IMG/VR virus record: IMGVR_UViG_3300014914_000030
Coordinates: 1 to 28,549 of that record
DNA length: 28,549 nucleotides
Direction: 5' to 3' (one strand)
Below the pieces are notes generated by a model. It was given only the letters and a program-made list of their open reading frames with translations. It made no database searches and was not told where the DNA came from. This document shows positions 1-28,549 of the stretch, one piece after another (within the stretch, counting starts at the first letter, position 1; each line of letters begins with the position of its first letter). The translations under genes were made by a program, and so were the position numbers.

Positions 1-123
1 AGGATTTTGTGGTTGTATGTCGAGGATATTGAATTTTTAATTACGGAAAGCTTGAAATTACAAAAGCTTTAGGCATGAGAATAAGGAGTGGTCAAGTCTA
101 TAGCAGTAGCAGAGGAGAGAAGG
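1..123. repeat. Left inverted terminal repeat (123 bp)
   Basis: Bases 1..123 are the exact reverse complement of 28427..28549; the match breaks at 124 (A versus G). Confidence 0.98.
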
Positions 124-2159: not shown

Positions 2160-2735
2160 TCACCTTGACATTTGTACGTAGTATCTTATTGTGAGTGTGT
2201 CTCCAGCATCCCAATCTACTGGTACGGCTGAGAATACCTTTCTTGCTAGCATGTCTCCACCAGAGCTTGCATTGAAGATTCCAGTTTCTGATATGTTCAT
2301 TGAGCCAGACAGACCGTCATCTTTTGAGAATGTAGCTTCTAGAAGGGCTGTATCATCCGTGATTGTTGTGGTTGTTTGGGATACTGAGGCTGATTTTCTG
2401 GCTACTTCGTATTCTAGGGCTGTGTCTGTAGCTGATTCTGAGGTTGTTCCAGAGCCTATGGCTAGGTAGCCGAATTTGTCTTCTGTTAGACCAGCAAAGA
2501 TTAGTCTGACCATGCAAGCTAGACCTACGTTAGTTATGATGTTCTTTCTAAAGTAGAAGTCTCCTTCTTTTGCTGGAAAGCTTGTCAAAATTGGTACTGG
2601 ATTTCCTTTCATTATTGCTTTTGGTGGTGCTCCAGCCTTGTATTTGATGTTTCCGTTTTTGTCTCTGACTATAATTTCTATCCATCCTTGTACTTTTGTT
2701 GTGTCAACATCTTTGGGAATCTTCTTTTCAGTCAT
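2160..2735 (-). CDS. Phage tail-collar fibre-like protein (DUF3751-like)
   Basis: NIITNVG...YLAIGSG...TDTALEYEVARK...ISETGIFNASSGGDMLAR...GDTLTIRY follows the tail-collar consensus order. Confidence 0.75.
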   Translation of the reverse strand: MTEKKIPKDVDTTKVQGWIEIIVRDKNGNIKYKAGAPPKAIMKGNPVPILTSFPAKEGDFYFRKNIITNVGLACMVRLIFAGLTEDKFGYLAIGSGTTSESATDTALEYEVARKSASVSQTTTTITDDTALLEATFSKDDGLSGSMNISETGIFNASSGGDMLARKVFSAVPVDWDAGDTLTIRYYVQMSR

Positions 2736-2763
2736 GATTCACGACCAATAAAGCAATTATTAA

Positions 2764-2785
2764 GAAAGAATATTTAAATTCTTTC
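2764..2785. promoter_or_regulatory. Palindromic bidirectional BRE/TATA promoter
   Basis: GAAAGAAT-ATTTAA-ATTCTTTC has 8-bp inverted arms around a TTTAAA core, about 40 nt from each of the divergent starts 2735 and 2818. Confidence 0.65.
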
Positions 2786-2817
2786 GGAGTTAGATTCAAG
2801 GTTAGGGGTAAAGCACT

Positions 2818-3111
2818 TTGGCTGTAGGAGACGTAGTTTCTGACCTTGTTTCAGTATCAGCTAATGGAACTTTAGACATTCAGCCACCATCTGGAGAAGA
2901 GTGGGTTATCCACAACATCTACCATGAGTATGACATAGAAGTAGTCTTTACTGATGGTACTAATGAGTTGTCTTTCTTAACGCATGAGGGGAAAGGTGTT
3001 CTTTCAAAATTTGCTTTCCATGTTAGGAATGGTTTGTGGATTAGGGTTAAGAATTTGGATTCTGCAAATTCTAGGCTTATTGGGTATGATGGAGTGGTAA
3101 CCAAGGCATGA
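2818..3111 (+). CDS. Small beta-sandwich putative virion protein
   Basis: 97 aa, LDIQPPSGEEWVI motif; stop overlaps next start (ATGA). Confidence 0.7.
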   Translation: MAVGDVVSDLVSVSANGTLDIQPPSGEEWVIHNIYHEYDIEVVFTDGTNELSFLTHEGKGVLSKFAFHVRNGLWIRVKNLDSANSRLIGYDGVVTKA

Positions 3112-3533
3112 ATGACATAATTACTCCAGAGACCCTTTTGCAGAGAATCGTTATAGCCTTGAAGTTTGGCTCTGAAGGGGCTACAACTACAAGCACAAGC
3201 TATGTTACGATTGCTGATAGTGATATTGCATTTGACCCTCAGAAAATTAAGAAAGCTATGCCTAATCGTAAGCTCTATGCCAAATTCATTTATCATTTAA
3301 AGAACGATACGGATGGTGAGAAAACTTACGCTAGGATTTATAGGCAAAATGCTGGGACTCCAGTTGATGGGAGTGAGGTTTCTGTTACTGGTGCTGGATG
3401 GGGGATAGTGGAAACTGATTGGATAGATTTTTCGGATGAAAGTGAGGAAAGCTATCAAGTTCAGATGTATGTTACTGGTGGTGTTGGAGAATACAATAGC
3501 ATTATTATGTTGCTGACTAATATTAAGTTCTAG
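3108..3533 (+). CDS. Putative receptor/carbohydrate-binding beta-sandwich virion protein
   Basis: TTTSTSYVTI, beta-rich, translationally coupled to neighbours. Confidence 0.6.
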   Translation: MNDIITPETLLQRIVIALKFGSEGATTTSTSYVTIADSDIAFDPQKIKKAMPNRKLYAKFIYHLKNDTDGEKTYARIYRQNAGTPVDGSEVSVTGAGWGIVETDWIDFSDESEESYQVQMYVTGGVGEYNSIIMLLTNIKF

Positions 3534-3535
3534 CT

Positions 3536-4849
3536 ATGATATGCTTGGTTAGTTTACCGTTTAAGGTGAATCTTGTTTCTCCTTTGAGTTTAGCAATTTT
3601 GAAGGCTTTAATTCCAGAATATGATTCTGTTTGTGTAGATTTATCCCCAGAGTTTAATCAATGTTTCATGAGATGGGTTTTAAAAGACAAGATTGAGGAA
3701 CTCCATGAAGAGACCTATCGTAGGGATTTTTATCCAGTTGAGTTATTGTTAAAGGGAGAGGGAGATTCCGAGTTATACAGCATTTGTCATAGCATGGCTG
3801 ATAGGATTCTTTCGTATGACCCTAAAGTGGTGTGCTTTTCTGTTCAGCTAGGCAATATTGGGACTAGTCTAACTGTCGGCAAAATCCTCAAAGATGAAGG
3901 AATAAAAGTTATTTTTGGTGGGAGTGCTTTTCTGTGGAAATCCAAGATTTATGCAAGAATGTTTCCTTGGATTGATTGTGTTGTAGAGGGAGAGGCTGAG
4001 CCAGTTTTTAGGAGTTTAATCCATAAGGTTATAAAGGGATACAAAGTTCAGAGGTTCATCATTAGTCCTATGCTTCTTGACTTAAATGAGTCGCCTATTC
4101 CAGATTACGGAGACCTAAACTTAGATAATTACCAACTTATAGGCATTGAGACTCAGAGAGGTTGTGTCAATAGGTGTTCTTTTTGCAATAATAGATTTTC
4201 ACAGTTGTACGAAGTTTATAGAGAGAAAAAAGTTGAGAGAGTTAAAAGAGAACTTGAAATCTTGAAGGAATATAACAAGCCTTTCTATTTTTGCGATAAC
4301 ATCACAAATCCTAATAGGAAGAGGCTTATTTCGTTATGTAAGGCTATAGCTCCATTAGGCATAAAATGGATGGGGGAGTTTTTGCCTAGAATTAGTTTTC
4401 AAGAGGCATATTGGTTATGGAAAAGTGGTTGTTTTTCCGTTACTTTAGGAGTTGAAAGCCTATGCGATAGAACCTTGAGGAAAATGGAGAAGCCTATCAC
4501 AGTTAGGGATATTTTAAATTCCATTGAAGCCCTAAGCATGTTTGGAATAGACATTCAAGTAAATCTAATTATTGGTTACCCTAGAGAGAGTCTGCTTGAT
4601 TTCTTGCAGACGGTTGTAAGGTTGTTTAGGGTGGAAAATAAAGTTAAGAGGTTTCTTTTTTCTGAGTTTGTAGTACCTCAAAAATCAAAAATTTACAATA
4701 ATCCAGATAAATACGGAGTAAAATTGCTTTCTAAATGTGAAAACAGTATTTTTTCAAGAGCTTTTCAATTAAAAAGTGAGTGGGAAAGAAGAAAGCAGAA
4801 ATTCTTATTAATTTTTATGGAGCTTCTCTTCAATAGGGAGTCTTTATGA
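3536..4849 (+). CDS. B12-binding-domain radical SAM protein
   Basis: ETQRGCVNRCSFC (CxxxCxxC); N-terminal PLSLAILKA, VIFGG, VVEGEAE typical of cobalamin-dependent class B radical SAM; LGVES and IIGYPRES in the barrel. Confidence 0.92.
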   Translation: MICLVSLPFKVNLVSPLSLAILKALIPEYDSVCVDLSPEFNQCFMRWVLKDKIEELHEETYRRDFYPVELLLKGEGDSELYSICHSMADRILSYDPKVVCFSVQLGNIGTSLTVGKILKDEGIKVIFGGSAFLWKSKIYARMFPWIDCVVEGEAEPVFRSLIHKVIKGYKVQRFIISPMLLDLNESPIPDYGDLNLDNYQLIGIETQRGCVNRCSFCNNRFSQLYEVYREKKVERVKRELEILKEYNKPFYFCDNITNPNRKRLISLCKAIAPLGIKWMGEFLPRISFQEAYWLWKSGCFSVTLGVESLCDRTLRKMEKPITVRDILNSIEALSMFGIDIQVNLIIGYPRESLLDFLQTVVRLFRVENKVKRFLFSEFVVPQKSKIYNNPDKYGVKLLSKCENSIFSRAFQLKSEWERRKQKFLLIFMELLFNRESL

Positions 4850-5049
4850 AGGTAGCACAGTTCCGATTTGCTATTAGTCAAGAGGGTGGTGGAGAACACG
4901 TTATGTACAACATGGCTAGAGTTCTGAAGGCAAGCGTTTTAGCTTTTGCTGTAACATCAGGAAAACTAAAAAAGAAAGGATATATCAAGGAGATAGCCTC
5001 TGATGTTGACAAGTTGATTCTGACACATAATCGTTTGGTAAAGGTGTAA
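4846..5049 (+). CDS. N-terminal fragment of a GT4 glycosyltransferase
   Basis: MKVAQF...GGGEHVMYNMARVL is the canonical GT4 N-terminal beta/GG-E/helix motif that the downstream ORF lacks. Confidence 0.7.
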   Translation: MKVAQFRFAISQEGGGEHVMYNMARVLKASVLAFAVTSGKLKKKGYIKEIASDVDKLILTHNRLVKV

Positions 5050-5059
5050 AAGTGGTCTT

Positions 5060-6025
5060 ATGGAAACGTACACAAAGAATGAGATTGAATCAATTTTGAA
5101 ATTAAGAAGGCTCTTCAGAGATGAGATTCTAAAGGAATTTGATGGGGTTGATGTTGTTGTTTTGCATTGTCCTTGGGATTTAGAGGTTTTTGATGGAGTC
5201 AATGATAAGGCTGTTGTTTTGTATGAACATAGAGCTTGTAGATTTGCAACTTTCATGTTTGATGAGATAATCAAGTATGTTGAGCCTCTACGTGCAAGAT
5301 TAGTTATTCGTGATAGAGGGTGGGTTTTGCAGAAGCATAAAGAGTTGTTCAAGAAGGCTGATTTGATTATTGTTAATAGTAAGTTTATTCAAGAGCAAAT
5401 GCTGAAGTGGTTCGGAATTGAGACCTATGTTTGTTATCCACCTATTGATTTGAGGGTTTTTCGACCAGTTAAGAATCCAAGCAGAGATTTCTTTCTTTCC
5501 GCACAGAGGGTTAACTGGCAGAAAAGAATTGACCTTCAGATTGACGCTTTTCGTGGTCTGAAAGAGAGGCTGATTATTGTCGGTAGCCCTAATGAGCCAG
5601 AGCCTAATCCTACATTGGTAGAATTAGCTAAGGATTGTCCCAATATTGAGATTTTAGGTGGTGTGAAGTTAAAGGAGCTTGTTAATTTAATGGCAAATGC
5701 TAAGGCTGTTATTCAAACTGGTTACTATGAGGATTTTGGATTAGTCCCAGTTCAAGCTTTGGCTTGTGGTACTCCAGCTATAGTGGTTGATGAAGGGGGA
5801 TTTAGAGAGACCATTCATTCCCCAAAGCTTGGTGTCAGAATAAAAAAGCCTTATCTGGAAAACTTAAGAAAAGCTGTTTTGGAGTTTGATATTAGCAGAT
5901 ATGACCCTAAGATATTGAGGGAAGAAGCTAAAAAGTATGGGTTTACGGAATTTAGAAAAAGATTCAATAAGTTACTTAAACTTGCTGTGAGGAAACATGA
6001 GGAACGATATAATTTACGTAGATAG
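5060..6025 (+). CDS. GT4 (GT-B) glycosyltransferase, main part
   Basis: IIVNSKF, YPPID, KRIDL, EDFGLVPVQALACGTP, GGFRETI. Confidence 0.92.
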   Translation: METYTKNEIESILKLRRLFRDEILKEFDGVDVVVLHCPWDLEVFDGVNDKAVVLYEHRACRFATFMFDEIIKYVEPLRARLVIRDRGWVLQKHKELFKKADLIIVNSKFIQEQMLKWFGIETYVCYPPIDLRVFRPVKNPSRDFFLSAQRVNWQKRIDLQIDAFRGLKERLIIVGSPNEPEPNPTLVELAKDCPNIEILGGVKLKELVNLMANAKAVIQTGYYEDFGLVPVQALACGTPAIVVDEGGFRETIHSPKLGVRIKKPYLENLRKAVLEFDISRYDPKILREEAKKYGFTEFRKRFNKLLKLAVRKHEERYNLRR

Positions 6026-6524
6026 GGAAAGAGGTCTCAGAGTTAGAGAGGCTGATTTAAGTAAGGTCGAAGATTTGAAGATTTTAGCTAGAGCAATCAA
6101 AAGCGATTTTTTAGCTGGTAGAGAGACTCCAACTGCGGTAAATGACCCTTTCTACAGCAAGTTCTGGAGCTATTATCTAGAGCTAGGCTGGGATATGTTC
6201 TGTTATCATCATAACCCTACAAAAACTAAATTTTTCATTGTGCTTAAAGACATGAGAACGGTTGGGTTTGCCCGTGTTAAAGAACAAAAAATACTGGGAA
6301 ATAAGGTCTTTTATCCAACGATTTATGCTAATGAGCTTGAGTATCCTTGGAGTGAGATAACTAACGATATAAGGGTCTGCATTTTTAATATGTTAAGAAG
6401 ATTTGGTTTTGATAGAGTTTTTATTGAGCTTCCTTTTGGTCATGAACTTAATAGTAAGCTTCCTTTGAGGAAGATGGTAGTAAGATTTAAAGAGTTAACA
6501 GAAATATGGGAGATGGGTTCATGA
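5997..6524 (+). CDS. Hypothetical protein, GNAT-like fold
   Basis: LRVREAD..D start and KFFIVLKDMRTVGFARV beta-hairpin resemble GNAT; acetyl-CoA motif not clear. Confidence 0.5.
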   Translation: MRNDIIYVDRERGLRVREADLSKVEDLKILARAIKSDFLAGRETPTAVNDPFYSKFWSYYLELGWDMFCYHHNPTKTKFFIVLKDMRTVGFARVKEQKILGNKVFYPTIYANELEYPWSEITNDIRVCIFNMLRRFGFDRVFIELPFGHELNSKLPLRKMVVRFKELTEIWEMGS

Positions 6525-7420
6525 CTTATGTTGAGCTATTGTTTAGGGTAAACCCAAAATTTCGACTCAAAGCTGACAAAGTTAGAGATATTTTAAATAA
6601 GAGGTTAGAACTTGAGAAAATACCGTTTGTTTTTGCTATTCATTCCATTACGGTTATGTCTAAGTGGTTAAGCGTTATTGTCGAAGTACCTAGGATTTTG
6701 GAAGTAAAGCCTTATGTATTGAACTTAAAATTCTTAGCAATCAGCCTTGGTGGTTTTGTTATGGATTCTCTTCTAGATTATGGTGTTAGATTTTTAACTT
6801 ATGAAGTGCATGGGTTGACTAGTTCTCTAGTTTATCATAAGGATTGGAGAAAGGAGAAGGTTGCTTTATGTGTTATCGCAAAGGATGAAGAACCCCATGT
6901 AGCAGACTTCATGAAATGTGTTGAGGGATGGTTTGATGATATTGTTGTTGGGGTAGATACCAGAACTGTGGATAGTACTTGGGATAGGTTTGCAGAAAGA
7001 GGGGCTAGGTGCTTCTATATTGATTGGGAAGACCATTTTGGTGAATTTAGGAATAGGACTATGAAATTTGTTGCTCCAGAGATAGATTGGGTTTTCTGGT
7101 TGGATGTTGATGAGTACCCAGAAGATAGGCTTCTTGAGAATTTGAAAGGTTTAGTTCAAACGAAAATTTATGATGCGTATTCTTTCATTAGAGTTAATCT
7201 GGAAACAAAAACTGAAGAGAGGGTTGTTAGGCTTTTTAGAAGGTCTAAGGGGAAGTGGGAAGGGAGAGTTCATGAATCTGTTTCTGGTATTGATTCAAAG
7301 AGGATTTGTGAGACAGACTTTAAGATTTTTCACATTCAGAGATGGATTAAAGAAGGTGGAAGTGTAGCTGAGGAACGTAATGCATTTTACCGTAAACTAG
7401 AAAATATGGATTCAGCCTAG
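6506..7420 (+). CDS. GT2 (GT-A) glycosyltransferase with extra N-terminal domain
   Basis: VALCVIAKDEE, WEDHFGEFRN, WVFWLDVDE (DxD), RLFR...WEGRVHE. Confidence 0.88.
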   Translation: MGDGFMTYVELLFRVNPKFRLKADKVRDILNKRLELEKIPFVFAIHSITVMSKWLSVIVEVPRILEVKPYVLNLKFLAISLGGFVMDSLLDYGVRFLTYEVHGLTSSLVYHKDWRKEKVALCVIAKDEEPHVADFMKCVEGWFDDIVVGVDTRTVDSTWDRFAERGARCFYIDWEDHFGEFRNRTMKFVAPEIDWVFWLDVDEYPEDRLLENLKGLVQTKIYDAYSFIRVNLETKTEERVVRLFRRSKGKWEGRVHESVSGIDSKRICETDFKIFHIQRWIKEGGSVAEERNAFYRKLENMDSA

Positions 7421-7442
7421 AAGATTCTAGGTGTAGCGTCTC

Positions 7443-9656
7443 TTGAGCATTACTATAAGAGCATTAGATGAGTATGGAGAGTTTTCGTTTAACGGTATTA
7501 ATGAGTTTGGTCTTCAGAGGGTTGGGTTTCTTGTTGAGTTTGGTAGCCGTGTAATTGTTCAGCAAATTGAGGCTGTTTTTACGGATTATGCTGTAGGAGA
7601 ATACATTATCCAGACTATTCACGGAATGTTTGTGGAAGTTGTTGAGACGGTCATTGTAGCTGAGTATCTGAGAAAAAGGTCTGAAAAGGTGATGGTTGAT
7701 GTAAGCATAGGGTCAGATTATCTGAGAAAGGCTACTCTTAAGGTCTTTACTGACAGTAGCATTGTTTCTGATAGGATTATAAAAGAGGCTATTAGATGTT
7801 TTGTTGACTCTGTGGTTTCAAGTGATTATGTACGGAGAGAGGTCAGTAAAAGTATTTTGGACTTGTCCAGAGTTAGCGATTGGATAGGGAAGACTTTAGC
7901 TAAAGTGCTTGTTGATTCTGAGGTTACGGTTGATTGGATTTCTAAGGCTATTTCTAGGAGCTTCATAGACTCCAGCAAATCCTATGATTATGTCAGTAAG
8001 GCTTCAATTAAGAGTTTTAAGGATGTAGGAAAGGGAATTGATAGAATTTCAAAAAGTGTCGGCGTATCAAGGCTAGATACGGTTCTTGTCTCTGATTGGA
8101 TTTCAAAAGAGTTGCTTAAGGCTGTTTTGGATTTAGGTAAGGTTGCTGATTGGGTCAGCACTTTAAAGGCTAAAATTATTGAGGTAAAGGATGTTGTGTT
8201 TCCAGACTACTCCATAGCTAAAGATTCTGTACTGGTTAAGAGAGATTCAAGCTTAATTAGTGATTTCTACAGTAAGAGTGTTGAAAAGGTTGCTACTGAC
8301 TCTGGGGTTATAAGTGATAGAGTGTCTCTTGCGTTTTCTAAAGTTCTGGTTGATTCTGGTGTTGTAAGCGATTACTTCAGTAAAGCTATTTCCAAAGTAG
8401 CAAGAGACATAGGAAAGGGAGTGGATTGGATTTCTAAGGACATTTTGGCTTCTATAGTTGAAAGTGCAAGGGTTTCTGATTGGGTTTCAAGAGATATGGT
8501 CTATTCGCTTATGGATTCAATTTCTGTAGCTGACTATATTAGAAGGGAGTTCAGTAAGAGTTTCAGAGATTATGTGGTAGGCGAATACGTAATTACAAAA
8601 ACTGCTACTCTGCACAGAAGCTATGCTGATGTTGTCAAATCGGTTGACTTTGTTTCTAAGGGTCTTTTCATCCCTCTGAAGGATACAGTAATAAGCTCAG
8701 ATTACCTTGTGAAAGAAATATCAAGAGTTGTTTCTGATGTCGCAAGAGTCCTCGATTGGATAGGTAGAAGGGTTGCAGTTACTGTTTCAGACTTAGTTAA
8801 AGGTCTAGATTATGTCAGTAAGAGCCTTGCAGTAAACATTTCTGATTTGGCTAAGGCTATTGATTGGATTGTTGTTCCTACGGTTAAGTTGATTGTTGTC
8901 AAGGATGTTGTGTTTCCAGACTTCTCTACAGCTAAAGGAGTTGAAAAGCCATTTAGAGAGGTTATCTCCGTCATTGACTTGAAGGCTGTTAAGGATATTG
9001 CTAAGAGATTTGTTGATTATGTTATAGTTAGAGACCAAGCAATTAGAACTAGGATTATTGAGGTCTTTGACCGTGTTATTGCTGACTTTGAGGTTGTCAA
9101 GGGCTTAAGTCCAGCTATTAGGGATTTGGTTAAGTCGGTTGATGTCATTACTAAGCTTAGATATACACTTACTGGAATTGATGTTAGACGTGTCTATTTC
9201 CACAAGTATCTAGGCGATATTATTGAGGATACGGATGAAATCAATAGGGTTGACTCTTCTAAGAACTTGCTGAACATGATTAAGAATTTGGCTAGTAAAA
9301 TGGGGGTTGCAGATGACCCATACATTAGTGCAGATATTTCTAAGCTTGAGGAAATCGTAGGGACAATGGAGTACGTTAAGGATGGAGAGTACGTTTATGC
9401 TAGGCATGTTAATGTGTTTGTGGATTACATGACCTATGCCATTGATGTTGTGCAGTTGCTTTATGATAAGTGGAAGTCTGCTAAGGGGACTAGTCTTCCA
9501 GAGGTTGAGTACTGGCTTGAAATGGCTAAGGGAAGAAAGGATTTAATGCGTACTGTCAAGTTTGGTGATATTGTTCTGACTAGAGACCACAACTTGATTA
9601 TAGATACTTTGAAGCCCTTAGAGTGCAGTATCAGAGTTATGGATAGGGAGTGGTAG
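7443..9656 (+). CDS. 737-aa fibre-like protein with 18-aa repeats
   Basis: Over 25 units such as DWIGKTLAKVLVDSEVTV / DWISKAISRSFIDSSKSY / DYFSKAISKVARDIGKGV, then a distinct C-terminal domain. Confidence 0.8.
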   Translation: MSITIRALDEYGEFSFNGINEFGLQRVGFLVEFGSRVIVQQIEAVFTDYAVGEYIIQTIHGMFVEVVETVIVAEYLRKRSEKVMVDVSIGSDYLRKATLKVFTDSSIVSDRIIKEAIRCFVDSVVSSDYVRREVSKSILDLSRVSDWIGKTLAKVLVDSEVTVDWISKAISRSFIDSSKSYDYVSKASIKSFKDVGKGIDRISKSVGVSRLDTVLVSDWISKELLKAVLDLGKVADWVSTLKAKIIEVKDVVFPDYSIAKDSVLVKRDSSLISDFYSKSVEKVATDSGVISDRVSLAFSKVLVDSGVVSDYFSKAISKVARDIGKGVDWISKDILASIVESARVSDWVSRDMVYSLMDSISVADYIRREFSKSFRDYVVGEYVITKTATLHRSYADVVKSVDFVSKGLFIPLKDTVISSDYLVKEISRVVSDVARVLDWIGRRVAVTVSDLVKGLDYVSKSLAVNISDLAKAIDWIVVPTVKLIVVKDVVFPDFSTAKGVEKPFREVISVIDLKAVKDIAKRFVDYVIVRDQAIRTRIIEVFDRVIADFEVVKGLSPAIRDLVKSVDVITKLRYTLTGIDVRRVYFHKYLGDIIEDTDEINRVDSSKNLLNMIKNLASKMGVADDPYISADISKLEEIVGTMEYVKDGEYVYARHVNVFVDYMTYAIDVVQLLYDKWKSAKGTSLPEVEYWLEMAKGRKDLMRTVKFGDIVLTRDHNLIIDTLKPLECSIRVMDREW
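8187..8922 (+). repeat. 22-bp exact direct repeat pair in fibre gene (8187..8208 and 8901..8922)
   Basis: AAGGATGTTGTGTTTCCAGACT occurs twice, 714 bp apart, both encoding KDVVFPD. Confidence 0.85.
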
Positions 9657-9659
9657 GGC

Positions 9660-10157
9660 TTGGGGCTAAAGCTCAATTTGGGTTGTGGATTGGATAAGAG
9701 GGAAGGTTATGTGAATATTGATGTTAGGGAAGATGTTGAGCCAGACATGGTTATTGATTTAGAAAAGGAGCTTCTGCAAAGGTTTGAGGATGAAAGTGTG
9801 GATGAGATTTTGGCTAAGGATTTCTTGGAGCATTTAAGCTGGAGAGTTGTTGAGACCTTTCTTAGGGATTGTCATAGGGTCTTGAAGCCTAACGGTAGAA
9901 TCTATATTCAGACTCCAGATTTGGAAGCTATTGCCAAAAAGGTTATTCTTAATCCCAATTTCAAGTTCGGAAGTCTCTATGGCTTTAAGGCTATTAGCTA
10001 TTGGGTTTATGGTGGTCAAGAGTACCCAGAGAATACTCACAAGTCTGGTTTTACAATGAGTAGTTTAAAACGGTTGCTTGAAGACATTGGTTTTGAGGTT
10101 TTGGAGTTGAAAAATGATAGTGGTACGAATATTGTTTGCTGGGCTAGGAAGCCCTAG
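9660..10157 (+). CDS. Class I SAM-dependent methyltransferase
   Basis: LKLNLGCG...GYVNID, FEDESVDEI, FLEHL, RVLKPNG. Confidence 0.92.
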   Translation: MGLKLNLGCGLDKREGYVNIDVREDVEPDMVIDLEKELLQRFEDESVDEILAKDFLEHLSWRVVETFLRDCHRVLKPNGRIYIQTPDLEAIAKKVILNPNFKFGSLYGFKAISYWVYGGQEYPENTHKSGFTMSSLKRLLEDIGFEVLELKNDSGTNIVCWARKP

Positions 10158-10855
10158 AGATTTCTTATTTCATGCCAAAAAACTGTATTTAGAACTGGAT
10201 GTTTTACGCAAGGGTGGAATAACCTACCGTTTTCTCCCAAAAATTCTCCATGGTCAGATGTTATCACAACTTTTCTATTTTTAGGTATTTTTGGCAGAAG
10301 ATTTGCTTTTATCTCTTTTAGGACTATTTGTAGGTTTTCTTTGTAAGCTTCTTTTATGATGTCTAGTGGGGGTAGATGTTTGGGATAAGTTACTCCATCA
10401 ATGATTGTATTTAATGGGTCGGGTTTCCATGCTTCAAATGTTACTCTGATTTTCCCTATGCTTGGGAAGTGTGGTTGCATATAGTGAATTATGACTCTTT
10501 CATTTTTAAGGTAAGGAAGGGAAGCTTTGGTAACTTCTCTGGGGGGAACTGTTTTAAGCTCATCATCCCAACCAAACTCCCATACGTCTATAACCTTCTT
10601 AAAGTGCTCTAACCCTAAGAAATCTCCAACCTTTATTTTGCTGTTACAAAAGGGGTTTGCTGAGACATATACGTATGGATACCTTGAAGGGAAATTCATG
10701 GTCAGCCATGTTTGAGTATCACTTGATTCAACTTCTAACTTTAAAAGCTCTCCCTTGAAAGGAGTAAACTTCTCATAATAATCATATCTGCAAGCATCCA
10801 GAACTATTAAGATGTCCCAAGACCACTTGTGAATATACTGAGTTGGTGCTTTCAT
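10154..10855 (-). CDS. Alkaline phosphatase/sulfatase-superfamily protein
   Basis: LIVLDACRYD, IHYMQPHFP, VITSDHGEFLGENG..HP metal-binding motifs. Confidence 0.88.
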   Translation of the reverse strand: MKAPTQYIHKWSWDILIVLDACRYDYYEKFTPFKGELLKLEVESSDTQTWLTMNFPSRYPYVYVSANPFCNSKIKVGDFLGLEHFKKVIDVWEFGWDDELKTVPPREVTKASLPYLKNERVIIHYMQPHFPSIGKIRVTFEAWKPDPLNTIIDGVTYPKHLPPLDIIKEAYKENLQIVLKEIKANLLPKIPKNRKVVITSDHGEFLGENGRLFHPCVKHPVLNTVFWHEIRNL

Positions 10856-10861
10856 TTGTAC

Positions 10862-11932
10862 TCAAAGATATTGTAGAAGAATATCTCTTAGCTGTTCTCC
10901 TATTTTATTCCATGTGAATTTTTCCTTAATGGTAGTTTCGGCGTATTCTTTTGCTCTTGCTTTGTAGTCATCTAGGTTGTCTATGATGTGGATTAGTCTA
11001 TCTACTGCTTTCTCTATTTTCATTTCTACTCCTATGCCTACGTGTATTGGGTTTCCTTCTAGCACTTGTTTTGATGGTTGGGAGTCAACTAAGCTCCATT
11101 TTGGAAGGAAGTCTTCCCATGCTCCACCTTTAGCTCCTATTACTGGTATTCCTCTTGCTAGTCCTTCTAATGCTGGATGTTCAAAACCACCACCACGTGA
11201 GGTTAGCAGAAAGACATCACATAGGTCGAAAAGCTCCATTTTTTGCTGGTCTGTTAACCATCCACTATAGACTTGTCCTTTCATTTCGTATTTTCCATCT
11301 TTTACGTATTCTGGGAAGTAGCCTACGCCAGCACCAGTTTTAAGAACTAGGAGAACATTGTTTCTTTCCGCTAGGGTTCTTCTGTAGATTTCAACTAGTA
11401 GGTCGAAGCCTTTTCTGTATGGTGAGTGCACTATGTAGCTGAGTAAGAGTATTCTGTTTTCTTCTTTCTTGAGTTTTGCTAGATGTTGGAATGTACTTGG
11501 TGGTTGTGGTGGTGTATCTATCCATTCTGGGGTTACTCCATGCGGAAGTACGTAAACTGGTTTTTTGACCCCAGATTTTATGTATGATTGCCTAGCCCAG
11601 TTTGAGGGGACTATTAGGGCTGTAGCGTATTGGGTTAGCTTTACTGCATATTTGCTGATTTGGTTTGAGTCTGCAACGTCTATTCCTATTAGGGCTGAGA
11701 ATTTGGGTACTTTTAGGGATAGGTTTCTTTCAAGCTTTTGGAATGGGTAAAAGTAAGGATGTAAGAAAACTACTGGGTTTCCGACTATGTGTATGAAGGG
11801 GAAGGCTAGCTCATCTATTTCTTCAACCCTAAACCATTGTCTTAGCTGGGCTACATGATGTACGCCTATGCTGTTCCATGAAACATGCTTAAAGAAGGGA
11901 TAGACGTACCAGATTGACTTTCTTGATAGCAT
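10862..11932 (-). CDS. GT4 (GT-B) glycosyltransferase
   Basis: IVPSNW, VLPHGV, RKGFDLL, SRGGGFEHPALEGLARGIPVI. Confidence 0.92.
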   Translation of the reverse strand: MLSRKSIWYVYPFFKHVSWNSIGVHHVAQLRQWFRVEEIDELAFPFIHIVGNPVVFLHPYFYPFQKLERNLSLKVPKFSALIGIDVADSNQISKYAVKLTQYATALIVPSNWARQSYIKSGVKKPVYVLPHGVTPEWIDTPPQPPSTFQHLAKLKKEENRILLLSYIVHSPYRKGFDLLVEIYRRTLAERNNVLLVLKTGAGVGYFPEYVKDGKYEMKGQVYSGWLTDQQKMELFDLCDVFLLTSRGGGFEHPALEGLARGIPVIGAKGGAWEDFLPKWSLVDSQPSKQVLEGNPIHVGIGVEMKIEKAVDRLIHIIDNLDDYKARAKEYAETTIKEKFTWNKIGEQLRDILLQYL

Positions 11933-12283: not shown

Positions 12284-12475
12284 TTAGCCTCTCCTTTGCT
12301 CTCTTAGTGGTCTAGGAGTTGGGCTTGTTCTTGGTCTTGGGGCTGTTTGTCTTGCTCTTCTCATATCTACTTTGATTGCCTCTGCTATTTTGGGTTCTAT
12401 CTGCTTGTAGAGTTCCGTGAATGATTTGGCTAATTCTTTCGGTCTAGTCCTTCTTTCAGCCATTTTAACCACCAT
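12284..12475 (-). CDS. Small basic protein
   Basis: Arg/Pro-rich tail; fills the gap between co-oriented genes. Confidence 0.55.
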   Translation of the reverse strand: MVVKMAERRTRPKELAKSFTELYKQIEPKIAEAIKVDMRRARQTAPRPRTSPTPRPLREQRRG

Positions 12476-15400
12476 ACATAGCTCTGCGTTTCAAGTATCT
12501 AGCTTTTTTCATTCCAGCAATAGACTTGTAGAACATAATCTCATAGTCATCTAGTCCGTATTCTCTTAGGGCTTCTAGCTCTGCTAGGAACTCCTCTTCT
12601 GTTATCACGTCTTCTACGAAGTCATTGATTAGTTCAGTTATGTATTTGCGTACTTCATCCATGATGGGTTTTAGCCTAATGAATTGTTCCCACATAGCTT
12701 TGATGACTTGTTTCTGTTCATCTTCTATGGGTAGTGCGTCTATCATCTTTTCAAGTTGACCCATAGCATAGTCTCTTGCTTTTGGTGAGTACTCTGCTAG
12801 CATGGTCATTCTGTCAACATCGCCTATGAGTTCTCTCCATGCAACCTTTATTCTTTCATAGTTGCTTGTCTGGAATAGAAGCTCTATTTCCTTGTCTGTG
12901 TAGCCTACATCCTTGAGTTTTGATAAGACTTCTTTGTAGTCTTCCTCTTTTAGCATGAAATAGACAAATAGGTCTTCGATTCTACTGTACATTTTCTTGA
13001 TGTCATCAATTACTGGTTTGAGGTCTATGTATTTAGCCCAGATTACTTGCCATTCTTCTGGTATTTTTCTTGCGGTCATTACTTCATCGAAAAATTCTCT
13101 GGCTTCTGGTACGATTTCGCATATTGTTGCTAGCTGGGAAGGTGTAGGTGCGTATTCTCTTTGAGCTATTCCAACTAGGGCTTCTGCAATTCCCTTTAGG
13201 TATTGGTATTCGTAGTCTGTGAGCTTTGCTCCTTGTTTTACGTACTCTATGATTTTGTCTGCGTCTTCTTTTGAGACCACTCCATAGGCTAGCCTATACA
13301 TTACGTAGCCTAGAAATCTCTGTGTCCAGTAGCGTACCCTTCTGATGGTGAATACCGTTCTCCAGATTTCTAGGCTATAGACGTAGGGTCTGAAGTATTC
13401 CTCTGTAAATTGTAGCTTCATTTCATTTGGAAGCTCTGTCCCAGTTATCAATGCATAGTCATAGGCGAATATCTTGTTTACAGCCTCTATCACCTTGCTT
13501 AGAATGTTCTTGTATTCATCATAGCTATCTATTATCCATTCTGAGTATGCTCTGCTTACTTCTCTGCTTGTGTCTCTGAGTATGTCTAGGCTTCTGTCCA
13601 TTAAGGCTCTAAGCTCTAGGAGTTTTCGTTCTGCTGGTAGGAACATTACTGGAAGGTTTACCCATCCAGCCTTCCATTCCATAGCTTCTGTATCGAAATA
13701 GGCTACTAGGAAGCTTGCTTTGATTATTCCAGCTAGTAGCGTTTCTAGTGCTTTTGTGTTCCAGAATCCTTCCTTGAATAGGTTTATGAATCCAGTTCTG
13801 AGTATTGTTCTTTCATCTGCTAGGGCGTTCATTGATTCTGCTATGGCTGTAGGGACAACCCAGTATGGGTGTAGTCCAGTTGCTTGTAGGGTTCTACAGA
13901 ACTGTGCTAGGTTCATCATTACTTTGCTTGTCGGTCTTCCTTCAATAATTGCTGTAGTGAACTTTTTGATTGGGTCTGATAAGGCTACGTCTTTGCTTGC
14001 TAGGTATTCGTAGATTCCCCATTTGACCATCCATCTCTGGTCTATTTTTGTTGGTATGTCTGCTATTGTGTCTATGTATATGAGGTTGTCTGATGTGAAG
14101 TTTGGTAACCAGCTAAATCTTGCGTAGTCATGCCATTTCATGTAGGTCTTTAGTGCTGAAAGCAACATTCCAGCTTGGAAGTTAAGTTCAGTTGGGCTTA
14201 TTGGTGTGAATGCTCCTAGCTCTTTGGCTCTGGCTTCAAGTTCCTTTTTCTCCTCATCTGTTAGGGTTACCCATAGCAGACCAGCAATTCCTCTTGTTGT
14301 GAAGTCCCATAGTCTTTCTGGTGGTGGGTATCTGAAGTGCAGTAGGTAGTATAGGTATGCTATGTCATCTGTCATTCCTCTTGTTCTCATGGCTCTTTTG
14401 AACTCATCTAGCTGTAGGATTATGTCTCTGACCATCATTCGACATAGGTCAGAGGCTGAGGGTAGGGAGTGTACTAGGCTTAATGGAATGTTCCTCTTCC
14501 TTCCGAATCTATCATAGATAGAAATCCAATCATCTAAGCTGTAGCTGAACATCCACCTTAATGCTTGGTCGGAGTAGCCGTAGAGACCATAGAAATAGTT
14601 AGCCCATTTGAGTACTTCAGCATAAGACTCTCTGGGAGCTATATTGACTAGGTTTCCTTCCGCATCGTATTCAAATAGGTAGTCTATGTGTCTTCTTGCA
14701 TATTCTAGAATTACGTCTTCTCTGGGGATTTCAACTGGTACTAGGTTTCTTATCATGTAGTTGACTAGTCTGCTTACTGGTCTAGTGAACCATATTGCAT
14801 ATCCATAGACTAGTCCTCTGCCAAATTCCTTTATGTATTCCATCATTTCTTTGCTGAATGTTGTTAGTGTTGAGCCTAGAGCTTTTGCAAAGTTGAATGT
14901 GGTATCTACTCCTAGTCCTAGTGGTCTGAGGTTTATCCTTAGATTCCATTCTAGGTCGCCTAGTGCTTTTCCAATTGCGGTCATAATCCAGCTAACAAGT
15001 CTTGTTGGTAACTGTCCGTATAATGGAAAGGTCATCAGACCCAGAGCATAGACAATTGTCGTTCCTACTTGCTCAGATATTTCCTCTTCTTTTGGTGCTA
15101 TTCCCAGAGAAGACATTACCCATCCTATAAGACTCCCTAGCACATCTTGTGCTACTGTTCTGGTTAGGTCTCCTACTCCACCAAGTATCCATTCAAAAAA
15201 TTCCTTTATTGGAGTGGTGATTAGCGTAAAGGCATTCCATATTCCAGAGAAGAATCTGAATAATGCGTCTCCCATGAAGTTAAAGAATTGTGTAAATACG
15301 TTTGATATGAAATCCCATGCTCCTTGTATTGCTGAGACAATCCATTCACCTAGTGTTTGGAGACCGTTCCATATTGTTTCTCCAAGCCATGTTAATCCTT

Positions 15401-16118
15401 GAACTAGTGGGGAAACTATGTATGTGTTAGCCCATCCTATTGGGTCTTGAATTAGTGCTATGAATCCTTCAGCTATTCCAGAGAAGAAGTTTCCTATCCC
15501 AGTAAAGATGTCTTTGAGCCAGTCTGGAAGCATGTTCCATATTGCTGAGGCTAGTCCACCTAGTGCGTCTGAGATTGGTTTTGCTATATTATCCCAGAAC
15601 CATTTGGGAAACCATTCTGGGAACTTCAGTATTGCGTTTATGAATCCAGTTAGGGCTGAACCTACTTGACTTACTACGTTTCCTACTCCCTCTAGAATGC
15701 TCGTTAGTCCAGTATAGACCGTTCCAGCTATGGTTACGGCTGTTTCTGAAATTGTGCTCCAAATCGTGTTTACTCCACTAGAAATTGTGTCTAAAATTGG
15801 TTTTATTACACTATTTATGAAGCTTTCAATTCCCGAAGTAATCCATGAAGCAACTGAATTGAACATTCCAGTTAGCCAGTCTTTTAGCTGACCTAGAGGG
15901 TCTAAGATTCCAGCAGTACTGCTAGATATGATGTCTAGGTTAATGACTTCTATGGCTTCTTGCTCTGTAATGACTTCCATTCCAGAGACAACATATACCT
16001 TGTAGAAGTCTGCGTTTTGGCATTGTTCAATGTATGCTTGGGCTAGTATTTCCCCTAGTTTTTTGATGTCTTTTAGTGAAATGTCAAGTATTGATTCTTC
16101 CTCTTCAATATTGCTCAT
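12465..16118 (-). CDS. 1217-aa large virion protein (terminal fibre / tape-measure-like N-terminus)
   Basis: Largest ORF; N-terminal W/F-periodic amphipathic helices, helical C-terminus; size and position parallel the roughly 1070-aa rudivirus terminal fibre protein. Confidence 0.75.
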   Translation of the reverse strand: MSNIEEEESILDISLKDIKKLGEILAQAYIEQCQNADFYKVYVVSGMEVITEQEAIEVINLDIISSSTAGILDPLGQLKDWLTGMFNSVASWITSGIESFINSVIKPILDTISSGVNTIWSTISETAVTIAGTVYTGLTSILEGVGNVVSQVGSALTGFINAILKFPEWFPKWFWDNIAKPISDALGGLASAIWNMLPDWLKDIFTGIGNFFSGIAEGFIALIQDPIGWANTYIVSPLVQGLTWLGETIWNGLQTLGEWIVSAIQGAWDFISNVFTQFFNFMGDALFRFFSGIWNAFTLITTPIKEFFEWILGGVGDLTRTVAQDVLGSLIGWVMSSLGIAPKEEEISEQVGTTIVYALGLMTFPLYGQLPTRLVSWIMTAIGKALGDLEWNLRINLRPLGLGVDTTFNFAKALGSTLTTFSKEMMEYIKEFGRGLVYGYAIWFTRPVSRLVNYMIRNLVPVEIPREDVILEYARRHIDYLFEYDAEGNLVNIAPRESYAEVLKWANYFYGLYGYSDQALRWMFSYSLDDWISIYDRFGRKRNIPLSLVHSLPSASDLCRMMVRDIILQLDEFKRAMRTRGMTDDIAYLYYLLHFRYPPPERLWDFTTRGIAGLLWVTLTDEEKKELEARAKELGAFTPISPTELNFQAGMLLSALKTYMKWHDYARFSWLPNFTSDNLIYIDTIADIPTKIDQRWMVKWGIYEYLASKDVALSDPIKKFTTAIIEGRPTSKVMMNLAQFCRTLQATGLHPYWVVPTAIAESMNALADERTILRTGFINLFKEGFWNTKALETLLAGIIKASFLVAYFDTEAMEWKAGWVNLPVMFLPAERKLLELRALMDRSLDILRDTSREVSRAYSEWIIDSYDEYKNILSKVIEAVNKIFAYDYALITGTELPNEMKLQFTEEYFRPYVYSLEIWRTVFTIRRVRYWTQRFLGYVMYRLAYGVVSKEDADKIIEYVKQGAKLTDYEYQYLKGIAEALVGIAQREYAPTPSQLATICEIVPEAREFFDEVMTARKIPEEWQVIWAKYIDLKPVIDDIKKMYSRIEDLFVYFMLKEEDYKEVLSKLKDVGYTDKEIELLFQTSNYERIKVAWRELIGDVDRMTMLAEYSPKARDYAMGQLEKMIDALPIEDEQKQVIKAMWEQFIRLKPIMDEVRKYITELINDFVEDVITEEEFLAELEALREYGLDDYEIMFYKSIAGMKKARYLKRRAMYGG

Positions 16119-17978: not shown

Positions 17979-19001
17979 CTATTGTACGAATGCCTTATAT
18001 GTGTTTGTTATGTCCATTTGCTTTGCGTATTCTTTTAGTTTCTCCTTTAATCCATCGAAGTTTCCTCTAGATTTTTTGTATAGGTCAAAAACATAGAGAA
18101 CTGTTCTAGACATTTCTTCTGTATCAAAATAATGGCATAGATACCATATTCCGTCTCCAAAGTCTTTCATTTCAGTTTCAACTATTGGAACTGGGAAGTT
18201 GATGTTTGTAGGTGCTACTTGGGTTAGGGGTTCGTATTCTGGATATATACATGGTACTCCCAAGGCTTGAGCTTCTAGAAGTGGGAGACCAAACCCTTCA
18301 CATAGACTAGTCTGCAAGTACACATCAAAGCTTCCTATTAGGCTGAGCACTTCCCATCTTGGAAGTTTCATAAATCTTGTATCCACATAGACATTGGGTA
18401 AGTCATCAAACCACTTTGCTCCTCTTTCCTCTGTTAGCACATAGAACTTTATACTAGAATCTTTTTCTAGTGTTTGTTGCACCACTCTTGCTAGGTATTC
18501 TAAGCCTTTTCTTGGATGTCCACTCTGTACAGTACCCACTACAAACCTTGCTCCTAGTCTTTTGTGTAGGTCTTTTTTGAGCTTTTCAGCCTCTTCCACG
18601 TCTTCTAGGTTGATTCCGTGAGGAATGGTCTTAATAACTTGGAGTCCTATGGCTGTTAGCATTTTTTGTGTGAATTTGCTGTTTGCTATGTATAGGATGT
18701 CTTCTCTATGCCAGTCTTTTACAAGGTGTTGTTTTGGCATTCCTTCGACGGTTGCATAGCATACACCAGATATTCCGTGTTTTTGATAGTCTCTTAGTTG
18801 GAGAAGCCAGTTTCCCACATAGAGAGGGTCAAATGTCATAACCATTATTGCCTTGTCGAACTCTTTAACTGCATTGAACCAGAAAATTTGCTGTTTGAAG
18901 TGTTTGGCTGGTACTCCCAGCTTGTTGAGTGCTTTTGTTATGTCTTCTGCAACCACAACTAGACTTGTCTTATGTGGGCTAATGATACCGTATGTTGTCA
19001 T
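17979..19001 (-). CDS. GT4 (GT-B) glycosyltransferase next to MCP
   Basis: IANSKFT, IPHGIN, HPRKG, EGFGLPLLEAQALGVP; MCP-GT adjacency is typical of rudiviruses. Confidence 0.93.
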   Translation of the reverse strand: MTTYGIISPHKTSLVVVAEDITKALNKLGVPAKHFKQQIFWFNAVKEFDKAIMVMTFDPLYVGNWLLQLRDYQKHGISGVCYATVEGMPKQHLVKDWHREDILYIANSKFTQKMLTAIGLQVIKTIPHGINLEDVEEAEKLKKDLHKRLGARFVVGTVQSGHPRKGLEYLARVVQQTLEKDSSIKFYVLTEERGAKWFDDLPNVYVDTRFMKLPRWEVLSLIGSFDVYLQTSLCEGFGLPLLEAQALGVPCIYPEYEPLTQVAPTNINFPVPIVETEMKDFGDGIWYLCHYFDTEEMSRTVLYVFDLYKKSRGNFDGLKEKLKEYAKQMDITNTYKAFVQ

Positions 19002-19046: not shown

Positions 19047-19421
19047 CTAGTAGGCTATAGCCCATCCACAGACTACGTTAATGATTTCATCACAGATGTC
19101 TGAGTTAAGTCCATAGGCGTTCACGAAGTAAGTCTTCAGAGCCGTAGCGATTGTCTTTGCTGAGTCTCCAGACTGGTGTAGGACATGTCTATAGAGCTTG
19201 GTGGCAAATGCCAAATAGGTGGCTCTTAAGCCACCCGTTACACCATAGTTGTCAAGGATTGGTCGAACCATGTCCCTTACCGTTCCGATTGCGTTGAGTC
19301 CAGCTTGTGCTCTGTCAAGGGCTACACTCTGAACATCTGTGAACCTTGTGCTAATTACTGTGGGGTTGAACTTCGCTTGGTATTTCTTGTACATGTCAAG
19401 ACCGTCTCTATAGAGGGGCAT
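19047..19421 (-). CDS. Major capsid protein, SIRV2/rudivirus-type (Adnaviria)
   Basis: KYQAKFNPTVIST, LDNYGVTGGLRATYLAFATK, LKTYFVNAYGLNSDICDEIINVV align with recalled rudivirus MCP motifs (KWQAKF..NPTVAST, YGITGPNRAIYQGFGLK, LKGYYISAFNANPQVLDAVVNII); AAGGTGA SD. Confidence 0.9.
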   Translation of the reverse strand: MPLYRDGLDMYKKYQAKFNPTVISTRFTDVQSVALDRAQAGLNAIGTVRDMVRPILDNYGVTGGLRATYLAFATKLYRHVLHQSGDSAKTIATALKTYFVNAYGLNSDICDEIINVVCGWAIAY

Positions 19422-28426: not shown

Positions 28427-28549
28427 CCTTCTCTCCTCTGCTACTGCTATAGACTTGACCACTCCTTATTCTCATGCCTAAAGCTTTTGTAATTTCAAGC
28501 TTTCCGTAATTAAAAATTCAATATCCTCGACATACAACCACAAAATCCT
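28427..28549. repeat. Right inverted terminal repeat (123 bp)
   Basis: Exact reverse complement of 1..123. Confidence 0.98.

Follow-up and report, generated by a model that had tools for sequence, protein, structure and literature searches.

Many archaeal viruses encode glycosyltransferases, yet hardly anything is known of what these enzymes modify or make. The virus genome IMGVR_UViG_3300014914_000030 (28,549 bp, analysed over its whole length and hereafter called the window) raises this question for a set of enzymes encoded around a repeat-fibre gene: glycosyltransferases of the GT4 and GT2 types, a B12-type radical S-adenosylmethionine (SAM) enzyme, a GNAT-fold protein, a SAM methyltransferase and an AlkP-superfamily enzyme. 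What do these enzymes build, on what, and do they belong together? A sequence-only reading had described them as one glycan-building and tailoring cassette interleaved with fibre genes, which might act on fibres, on the capsid or on DNA. Our best explanation, to which we lean moderately, comprises three layers: a mobile glycosylation module, a pair of methyltransferase and AlkP-fold genes, and an ancestral rudiviral GT4. Glycosylation of virion proteins is the function that we somewhat favour.

Related loci were fetched through homologues of the radical SAM enzyme (rSAM) and of the AlkP-like protein, and their gene orders were determined by tblastn of the window open reading frames (ORFs). The comparison, extended by a search with the 141-aa family, shows an invariant collinear core of five genes. 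In order, these encode proteins of 141 aa and ~66 aa, a GT4 of ~320 aa, a GNAT-fold protein and a domain of ~110 aa. The core gene order is unchanged in five further IMG/VR contigs (L186–L190). In three tailed-virus contigs (L180, L181 and L184), the core lies in the head module near the genes for the HK97 major capsid protein (MCP) and cement protein, with a GT4 49%–52% identical to that of the window and with neither the rSAM nor the GT-A (GT2) domain. Given that these tailed-virus contigs carry the core in a constant order, the module is horizontally mobile, and rod-shaped and tailed viruses of archaea share it. The window virus and some seven other loci have an expanded core, which has gained the rSAM and, in most of them, also a GT-A domain that resembles GmaR and SunS and is fused to the ~110-aa domain. 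The GT-A domain is present in five of the six complete rSAM loci and in none of the eight rSAM-less loci. By these comparisons the rSAM is an accessory to the five-gene core and not its centre, an optional add-on to a unit that the sequence-only reading had missed.

The earlier claim that the enzymes form a linked set held up well. Cassette genes keep company in 14 or more independent virus contigs from metagenomes, their catalytic motifs are mostly intact, and all eight genes listed earlier lie where they had been placed and have the folds assigned to them. The nine plus-strand genes at 2818–10157 overlap or abut (junctions in order of -4, +2, -4, +10, -29, -19, +22 and +3 nt, thus from -29 to +22 nt), forming a tightly packed operon that converges on two minus-strand genes. 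We are highly confident of the gene identities, and confident that the cassette genes are functionally linked. The 67-aa gene, the 141-aa gene just 5' of the region first described and the two-domain nature of the GT2-like protein had been passed over.

Around the core, the rSAM loci show a limited set of arrangements. The genes of L011 and L012 encode a 141-aa, a 145-aa and a 55-aa protein followed by the rSAM, GT4, a 148-aa protein and GT2; L013 and L020 have the same order with a single 141-type gene. The order is 136-aa, 66-aa, GT4, 147-aa, rSAM and GT2-like in L016; 145-aa, 69-aa, GT4, 174-aa, rSAM and 111-aa in L022; and 141-aa, 145-aa, 63-aa, 166-aa, rSAM, GT4 and GT2 in L183. The order rSAM–GT4–small ORF–GT2 recurs in L011/L012 and L013/L014, and is permuted in L016, L022 and L183. 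The full block of L011 runs GT4–AlkP–fusion of three methyltransferase domains with GT4–141–145–55–rSAM–GT4–148–GT2. Some clusters are larger still: L183 has additional GT2s and an enzyme of the rhamnosyl-O-methyltransferase type, and L016 a DegT aminotransferase together with an epimerase/dehydratase.

The window itself records how the module was acquired. Its nearest relative, L008, shares 57%–78% identity with it across the structural genes on the flanks, the glycosyltransferase of the ORF356 type and the 1217-aa protein. In L008, the homologue of the 191-aa gene that flanks the insertion point (71% identical) is directly followed, after a 115-nt spacer, by the fibre homologue, whereas the window has 4.7 kb there. 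Because L008 has the fibre gene and lacks 2818–7420, this block was inserted in the window virus. Proximity to the fibre gene is therefore a consequence of the insertion site, and the interleaving with fibre genes emphasised earlier is incidental. The 737-aa repeat protein is probably a fibre or minor virion protein outside the mobile cassette: its self-similarity at 18 residues is 0.77 against -0.73 +/- 0.09 for shuffled sequences, the repeat is seen in the protein only, with no tandem repeat at the DNA level of the gene, and its L008 homologue (36% identity) carries DUF2341, as does SIRV2 ORF564. Elsewhere the module neighbours tail and Laminin_G_3 genes (L015, in which the rSAM and GT2-like genes adjoin the tail genes), a beta-helix protein (L183) or head genes (L180, L181 and L184), and by these positions it tends to land in structural operons. 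The divergent intergenic region 5' of the operon is likely its promoter, judging from a TATA-like box read in the sequence (Table 1). The first gene of the operon, a 97-aa ORF, has no homologue in any fetched related locus.

The receiving genome is complete and linear, given the perfect 123-nt inverted repeats at both ends. Its capsid protein is of the SIRV2 type, at most 36% identical to that of any of 40 deposited rudivirus records, and the glycosyltransferase gene adjoining the MCP gene is a homologue of SIRV2 ORF335. As tblastn against six rudivirus genomes (L001–L006) matched four window genes alone (the capsid gene, two glycosyltransferase genes and, weakly, the C-terminus of ORF1070), the window belongs to a very divergent rudivirus-like virus. 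The features that mark it as Rudiviridae-like (Adnaviria) are the SIRV2-type capsid, a linear genome with inverted terminal repeats, and ORF356 and ORF335 homologues; this likeness, judged by capsid, ends and glycosyltransferases, is not a family assignment.

Table 1. Features of the window discussed in the text (positions in the 28,549-bp genome)
Feature	Position	Strand	Remark
Inverted terminal repeat, left	1-123		Perfect, 123 nt
191-aa protein	2160-2735	-	C-terminal part matches tail-fibre/virion-structural PHROGs (phrog_5417, 2e-19; phrog_4176, 2e-12)
Divergent intergenic region	2736-2817		A/T-rich TATA-like box TATTTAAAT, ~40 nt 5' of first plus-strand ORF; likely promoter
97-aa ORF, operon gene 1	2818-3111	+	4-nt overlap with next gene
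141-aa conserved protein	3108-3533	+	First gene of mobile core; proposed virion-surface protein, candidate glycan acceptor
B12-binding-type (class B) radical SAM enzyme	3536-4849	+	Optional add-on; PF04055, E = 8e-15
67-aa small protein	4846-5049	+	Second core gene; GGGE(R/H)V motif
GT4 (GT-B), ~320 aa	5060-6025	+	Core gene; Glycos_transf_1 (PF00534), E = 6e-24
175-aa GNAT-fold protein	5997-6524	+	Fast-evolving core gene; no sequence-family match
Two-domain GT2-like protein (304 aa)	6506-7420	+	N-terminal ~115-aa core domain fused to GT-A (GT2) domain with AKDE and DVD motifs
737-aa repeat protein	7443-9656	+	~25 copies of 18-residue repeat, consensus ...VSDWISK...
Class I SAM methyltransferase	9660-10157	+	Methyltransf_11/23 type; paired with AlkP-like gene
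233-aa soluble minimal AlkP-superfamily enzyme	10154-10855	-	Phosphoethanolamine-transferase/sulfatase branch; AlphaFold2 pLDDT 96
GT4, orthologue of rudiviral core glycosyltransferase	10862-11932	-	Homologous to SIRV2 ORF356
1217-aa protein	12465-16118	-	N-terminal third matches many tape-measure PHROGs, E down to 4e-14
Glycosyltransferase adjoining MCP gene	17979-19001		Homologue of SIRV2 ORF335
Capsid protein, SIRV2 type	19047-19421	-	Sulf_coat_C, E = 1e-20
239-aa protein, two winged-helix domains	22861-23580	+	ArsR/HTH_5 and MarR-like matches
284-aa DUF932 protein	25022-25876	-	Family match
Inverted terminal repeat, right	28427-28549		Perfect, 123 nt

Which protein might receive the glycan? 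The 141-aa protein is the most conserved part of the module, above every enzyme: its family comprises 39 clusters, mostly 56%–69% identical to the window protein, and its gene lies upstream of the GT4 in every locus, including the head modules of the tailed viruses near the MCP and cement genes. Residues T27, T28 and S29 are invariant, within a T-T-S(-T) cluster. In a metagenome-assembled genome of Nanohaloarchaea, a version of the domain is fused to a twin-arginine translocation (Tat) signal, and the 7.9-kb contig (L182) also encodes homologues of the GT4 (40%) and of the AlkP-like protein (32%) together with a type I phosphodiesterase, a cytidylyltransferase and an SDR/epimerase-family (adh_short/Epimerase) protein. 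This gene set suggests an exported, decorated protein and phospho-substituent chemistry. On account of the invariant T-T-S cluster, the location in structural modules and the Tat-exported cellular version, the 141-aa protein is the best acceptor candidate, and we put it forward as the glycan acceptor tentatively. Some members of the family (P0176, P0196 and L019:9305-9790) bear N-terminal extensions of 20–125 aa, that of P0196 being rich in Ser, Thr, Asp and Gly; thus, the domain can form the C-terminal part of a longer protein. The family has no relative in Pfam, PHROG or, by profile search, the PDB, and profile comparisons with the 97-aa and 112-aa ORFs were negative. None of the 50,697 GenBank phage and archaeal-virus records holds a match to the 141-aa protein, the rSAM or the AlkP-like protein.

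The second core gene is likewise shared: the 67-aa protein is 31%–48% identical to the small ORF following the 141-aa gene in L011–L013, L020, L181, L184 and L186–L190. The possibility that it is the cut-off N-terminus of a frameshifted GT4 was rejected, since the 67-aa ORF has homologues of its own, which lie upstream of the rSAM in L011–L013, and the GT4 is of full length against all relatives.

The GT-A domain hints at the kind of chemistry. The call of a GT2 enzyme is upheld by a match to phrog_13126 (E = 5e-19; the Pfam matches are under cut-off), by a DVD motif (in WLDVDE) kept in four of five relatives, and by matches of the family profile to solved GT2 enzymes, the best being GmaR (1.1e-20), SunS (5e-11) and a ThuS-like protein (6e-9). 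GmaR O-GlcNAcylates Listeria flagellin, SunS and ThuS glycosylate peptides, and all three are cytoplasmic GT2 enzymes that place a sugar directly on a protein or peptide. Given these relatives, the chemistry would be protein-directed, and by analogy we infer that the GT-A domain may glycosylate a protein or peptide directly. Its N-terminal ~115-aa partner is a separate gene in L022, L180 and L181. The homologue in L016 (9585-10790, 55% identical) has an extra C-terminal segment of ~100 aa with an FDIDGT motif, which looks like motif I of HAD phosphatases; no family match was obtained for this homologue.

The core GT4 keeps 47%–56% full-length identity across all viral loci, scores 84.8 bits with Glycos_transf_1 (cut-off 26.4), and its family profile matches best, within the PDB, the mannosyltransferase WbaZ-1 of A. 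fulgidus (1.3e-34). The second GT4, at 10862-11932, is the ancestral component. It scores 36 bits against the same cut-off, matches phrog_2170 (E = 5e-44), and shows 32%–34% full-length identity to its counterparts in six rudiviruses (34% to SIRV2 ORF356).

The GNAT-like call was sustained for the fold only. The AlphaFold2 model (pLDDT 78, pTM 0.78) has the topology beta-alpha-alpha-beta3-alpha-beta-alpha-beta and yields 444 PDB matches at E <= 0.001, the best 50 of which are all GNAT-type acyltransferases; the top Foldseek matches are ArsN, RimL, FdhC and PseH (E ~3e-7, TM-score 0.5–0.6). There is no Pfam acetyltransferase match, and the acyl-CoA loop Q/R-x-x-G-x-G/A is absent from the window protein and not conserved in the seven-member alignment, in which G64 alone is invariant. 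Only seven relatives were found among 1.8 billion representative proteins, with positional homologues in L184 and L188–L190, and in L181 by hhalign (88% probability).

The two halves of the cobalamin radical SAM assignment are supported unequally. The radical SAM core is solid, at 55.8 bits for Radical_SAM (PF04055) against a cut-off of 29.5, and the CxxxCxxC cysteines C210, C214 and C217 are invariant in ten family members. The B12-binding domain (PF02310) is weakly detected in the window copy, at 21.4 bits under the cut-off of 32.1; it is on record in seven of the nine closest homologues, and the cobalamin domain of TokK aligns to residues 85–163. Against NCBIfam, the rSAM has 30 matches, all far under their cut-offs (the best at 88.6 bits against 360) with the best ones all to B12-rSAM families, so that these cut-offs assign it to no characterised subfamily with a known reaction. 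The family comprises about ten close members, every one on a metagenomic contig and several of them viral, and the best match among 185,579 species genomes is 24%–32% identical. In one 54.8-kb contig, Ga0190308_1000029 (L020 and L023), the rSAM gene is matched at both ends, which suggests a circular or terminally redundant genome with the cassette.

These enzymes also fit a maturation akin to that of ribosomally synthesized and post-translationally modified peptides (RiPPs), in which the 141-aa or the 67-aa protein would have its side chains C-methylated or otherwise altered by the rSAM and would be glycosylated by the SunS-like GT-A domain, the product being a modified protein instead of a tailored glycan; this overlaps with virion-protein glycosylation. 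The second-best NCBIfam match of the rSAM is a RiPP-maturation C-methyltransferase family (2.3e-24), the ApyD and MCR glutamine C-methyltransferase families are matched too, the GT-A domain counts SunS and ThuS among its nearest solved relatives, small conserved ORFs always lie beside the enzymes, and the rSAM and GT-A domain travel together as counted above. However, the rSAM matches are those far under cut-off, the 141-aa protein has the size of a folded domain and is highly conserved, unlike a leader-core peptide, and the additional GT2s, sugar O-methyltransferase, DegT aminotransferase and epimerase nearby point to sugar chemistry. We assign RiPP-like maturation a low probability.

Sugar chemistry is also indicated by the second layer, in which the methyltransferase and AlkP-fold genes move as a unit. 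The methyltransferase is 59%–61% identical in L007–L009, adjoining an AlkP-like gene in each, and its identity to the methyltransferase domains of a GT4 fusion in L011 is 35%. There, a 917-aa protein (L011:6134-8887) consists of three Methyltransf_11-type domains and a complete GT4. The AlkP-like gene of L011 (40% identical) lies between a GT4 and this fusion, and the three genes together directly precede the 141-aa/rSAM block. As its type is fused to GT4 in L011, which is the best evidence available, the methyltransferase is assigned a place in the sugar pathway, as its glycan-tailoring role in the sequence-only reading had anticipated. A preprint on related rod viruses interprets their small methyltransferase as UbiG-like and connects it with the biosynthesis of quinones (bioRxiv 10.1101/2025.08.23.671958). 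The fusion favours sugar methylation, and points to the quinone reading as a likely over-reading.

The AlkP-fold model gave 58 PDB matches at E <= 0.001, the best 50 of them all from the AlkP superfamily; the nearest structures are the catalytic domains of MCR-1, EptA and EptC (E ~1e-6), followed by sulfatases and LtaS-type synthases. All 59 family sequences compared share D20, R23, D25, H129, D201, H202 and H214, and at least 90% of them have T47. By the motif pattern, D20, D201, H202, H129 and H214 would serve as metal ligands at the active site, with T47 as the putative nucleophile. Among the relatives, 435 in total, PF00884 was matched in 30 of the 59 and PglZ in 18 of the 59. While the AlkP-like call stood, the sulfatase part did not: the C/S-x-P-x-R formylglycine motif is absent from the 233-aa sequence, the nucleophile position is Thr, and the nearest structures are phosphoethanolamine transferases. 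In a tailed-virus-like contig (L010:10001-11730), the gene immediately after a 296-aa AlkP-like homologue (41% identical) belongs to the PAPS-reductase family; a PAPS-reductase-like protein is encoded by SBRV1 as well.

Another reading is remodelling of the host surface, by which the module would alter S-layer or pilus glycans or membrane glycolipids of the host instead of decorating the virion, serving receptor masking (superinfection exclusion) or egress. The nearest structures of the AlkP fold act on lipid A or lipoteichoic acid, the best NCBIfam matches of the GT4 and rSAM are a lipid glycosyltransferase (GlcNAc-phosphatidylglycerol synthase, 1.4e-12) and a lipid-biosynthesis B12-rSAM, both far under cut-offs, and reviews do not decide between host and viral proteins as the targets of glycosyltransferases encoded by viruses (PMC6105669). 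Yet the 233-aa AlkP-fold protein lacks a membrane domain, its catalytic-domain strand beginning at residue 15 with no anchor as in EptA or MCR-1; the core lies inside head or structural operons of tailed viruses, and here in an operon with a fibre-like gene; and the solved relatives nearest to the GT-A domain act on proteins or peptides. In our estimate a host-surface target is improbable.

Hypermodification of viral DNA, that is, glycosylation and methylation of bases protecting against host restriction or CRISPR, had been raised in the sequence-only reading. In its favour are the general presence of glycosyltransferases, a methyltransferase and an rSAM, and weak matches to PF20706 (GT4-conflict) and to a candidate-defence rSAM model; PADLOC on the window returned generic rSAM and generic methyltransferase matches and nothing else. 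No nucleotide-modifying enzyme (hydroxymethylase, thymidylate-synthase-like enzyme, DNA transglycosylase or kinase) was found among the ORFs scanned, nor any other supporting feature, while the methyltransferase is of the small-molecule Methyltransf_11 type, fused to GT4 in L011, and the module sits in structural operons. We regard a DNA target as very improbable. In all, the sequence-only reading is partly supported: its folds, mostly intact catalytic motifs, linkage and glycan-tailoring role of the methyltransferase stand, and the sulfatase and the DNA route do not.

The foregoing enables us to propose a putative model of virion-protein glycosylation in the cytoplasm. The folds, motifs, synteny, mobility and insertion are shown by the comparisons above, and the acceptor, the sequence of steps and the individual reactions are inferred. 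The operon would be transcribed late in infection from a promoter at ~2760. The GT-A domain would directly attach the first sugar to Ser/Thr in a surface protein of the virion, most likely the 141-aa protein, and the GT4s would extend the glycan. The rSAM may then tailor it by C-methylation or another radical step, as may the GNAT-fold protein and the SAM methyltransferase, the latter by O- or N-methylation. The AlkP-fold enzyme would transfer or remove a phospho-substituent via a phospho-Thr intermediate.

Several points weigh against this model. The acceptor is a candidate only, and searches with the 141-aa, 67-aa and ~110-aa proteins detected no relative whose function is known. A first step of the GmaR kind cannot be general, because cores without the rSAM also lack the GT-A domain. 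The B12 domain of the window rSAM falls under the Pfam cut-off, and as the enzyme belongs to no characterised subfamily, methylation is no more than the most frequent reaction in its class. In the window GT4 the motif is E-x7-Q (residue 232 being Gln), and in seven of eight family members it is E-x7-E; the GNAT-fold protein, lacking the conserved cofactor-loop motif, may not be catalytic; and members of the AlkP-like family are common in cellular contigs too.

Beyond the cassette, the 1217-aa protein is probably the counterpart of the rudiviral terminal-fibre protein, judging from a weak match of its C-terminus to SIRV2 ORF1070 (E = 4e-5). According to a recent preprint, ArsR-like and 'UbiG-like' genes are hallmarks of Caldarchaeales-associated rod viruses; the ArsR-like gene of the window would hint at this lineage. 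No tRNA genes were found in the window, and a megablast search of the region for near-identical DNA found no match in the GenBank phage records.

How does this module compare with known systems? The closest set is that of the rudiviruses, with ORF356, ORF335 and ORF158a in SIRV2 and a gene triplet in SMRV1, ARV2, ARV3, SBRV1 and MRV1. Homologues of ORF356 and ORF335 are present in the window, and a methyltransferase and a ~230-aa gene lie beside the former, as in other rudiviruses. In the conserved triplet of canonical rudiviruses, a ~200-aa protein marked by an invariant DSD motif stands between a methyltransferase and the glycosyltransferase of the ORF356 type. In the window, by comparison with the six rudiviruses, the first two positions are held by the Methyltransf_11-type methyltransferase and the AlkP-fold gene, with no detectable similarity: the methyltransferase was not detectably similar to the rudiviral one, and orthology of the 233-aa gene with the ~200-aa gene was rejected after profile comparison, which gave no match to the GT2-like protein either. 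Unlike these genomes, in addition, the window has the seven-gene block 2818–7420, which is without counterpart in any of the six.

The enzymes resemble well-studied ones to different degrees. GmaR, SunS and ThuS are the best solved relatives of the GT-A family, but the window GT-A is fused to a virus-specific ~115-aa N-domain and embedded with a GT4, an rSAM and a GNAT-fold protein. Like the class B enzymes TokK, GenK, PhpK and the RiPP C-methyltransferases, the rSAM has the CxxxCxxC core, preceded by a probable N-terminal Rossmann-type domain, and its best family matches are all of class B; it differs in lying under every subfamily cut-off, in a small clade seen solely on metagenomic contigs. 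The AlkP-fold enzyme shares with EptA, EptC, MCR-1 and LtaS, whose catalytic domains are its best structural matches, the pattern Asp...Thr...His...Asp-His...His, but differs from EptA, EptC and MCR-1 in its length of 233 aa, a TM-score of ~0.5–0.6 and the lack of a membrane domain. Among filamentous archaeal viruses of the same realm, SFV1 encodes five putative glycosyltransferases and a GDP-mannose 4,6-dehydratase and has glycosylated virion proteins VP3–VP5, but no rSAM, AlkP-fold enzyme or 141-aa partner is reported there (PMC6105669); our literature searches found no adnavirus whose glycosylation operon is described as containing a radical SAM enzyme.

In summary, viral glycosylation genes as such were known. 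What is new is a concrete set of enzymes and putative substrate, in which a small conserved candidate acceptor is always inherited with its GT4, its exchange as a morphogenesis-linked glycosylation unit between two virus realms, and its two enzyme add-ons. That a self-contained module of a surface protein and its own decorating enzymes moves between rod-shaped Adnaviria and tailed Duplodnaviria and that a B12-dependent rSAM, of a clade so far seen on viral or unassigned metagenomic contigs only, modifies a virion glycoprotein, giving a C-modified, phospho-substituted glycan or side chain, is as a combined claim speculative and rather unlikely; if true, it would bring radical B12-dependent chemistry and an undescribed modification into virion maturation, and tie virus fitness to the host cobalamin supply. 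Compared with the six rudivirus genomes, in which neither was found, the window adds to the five-gene core a class B rSAM and a minimal soluble phosphoethanolamine-transferase-like enzyme.

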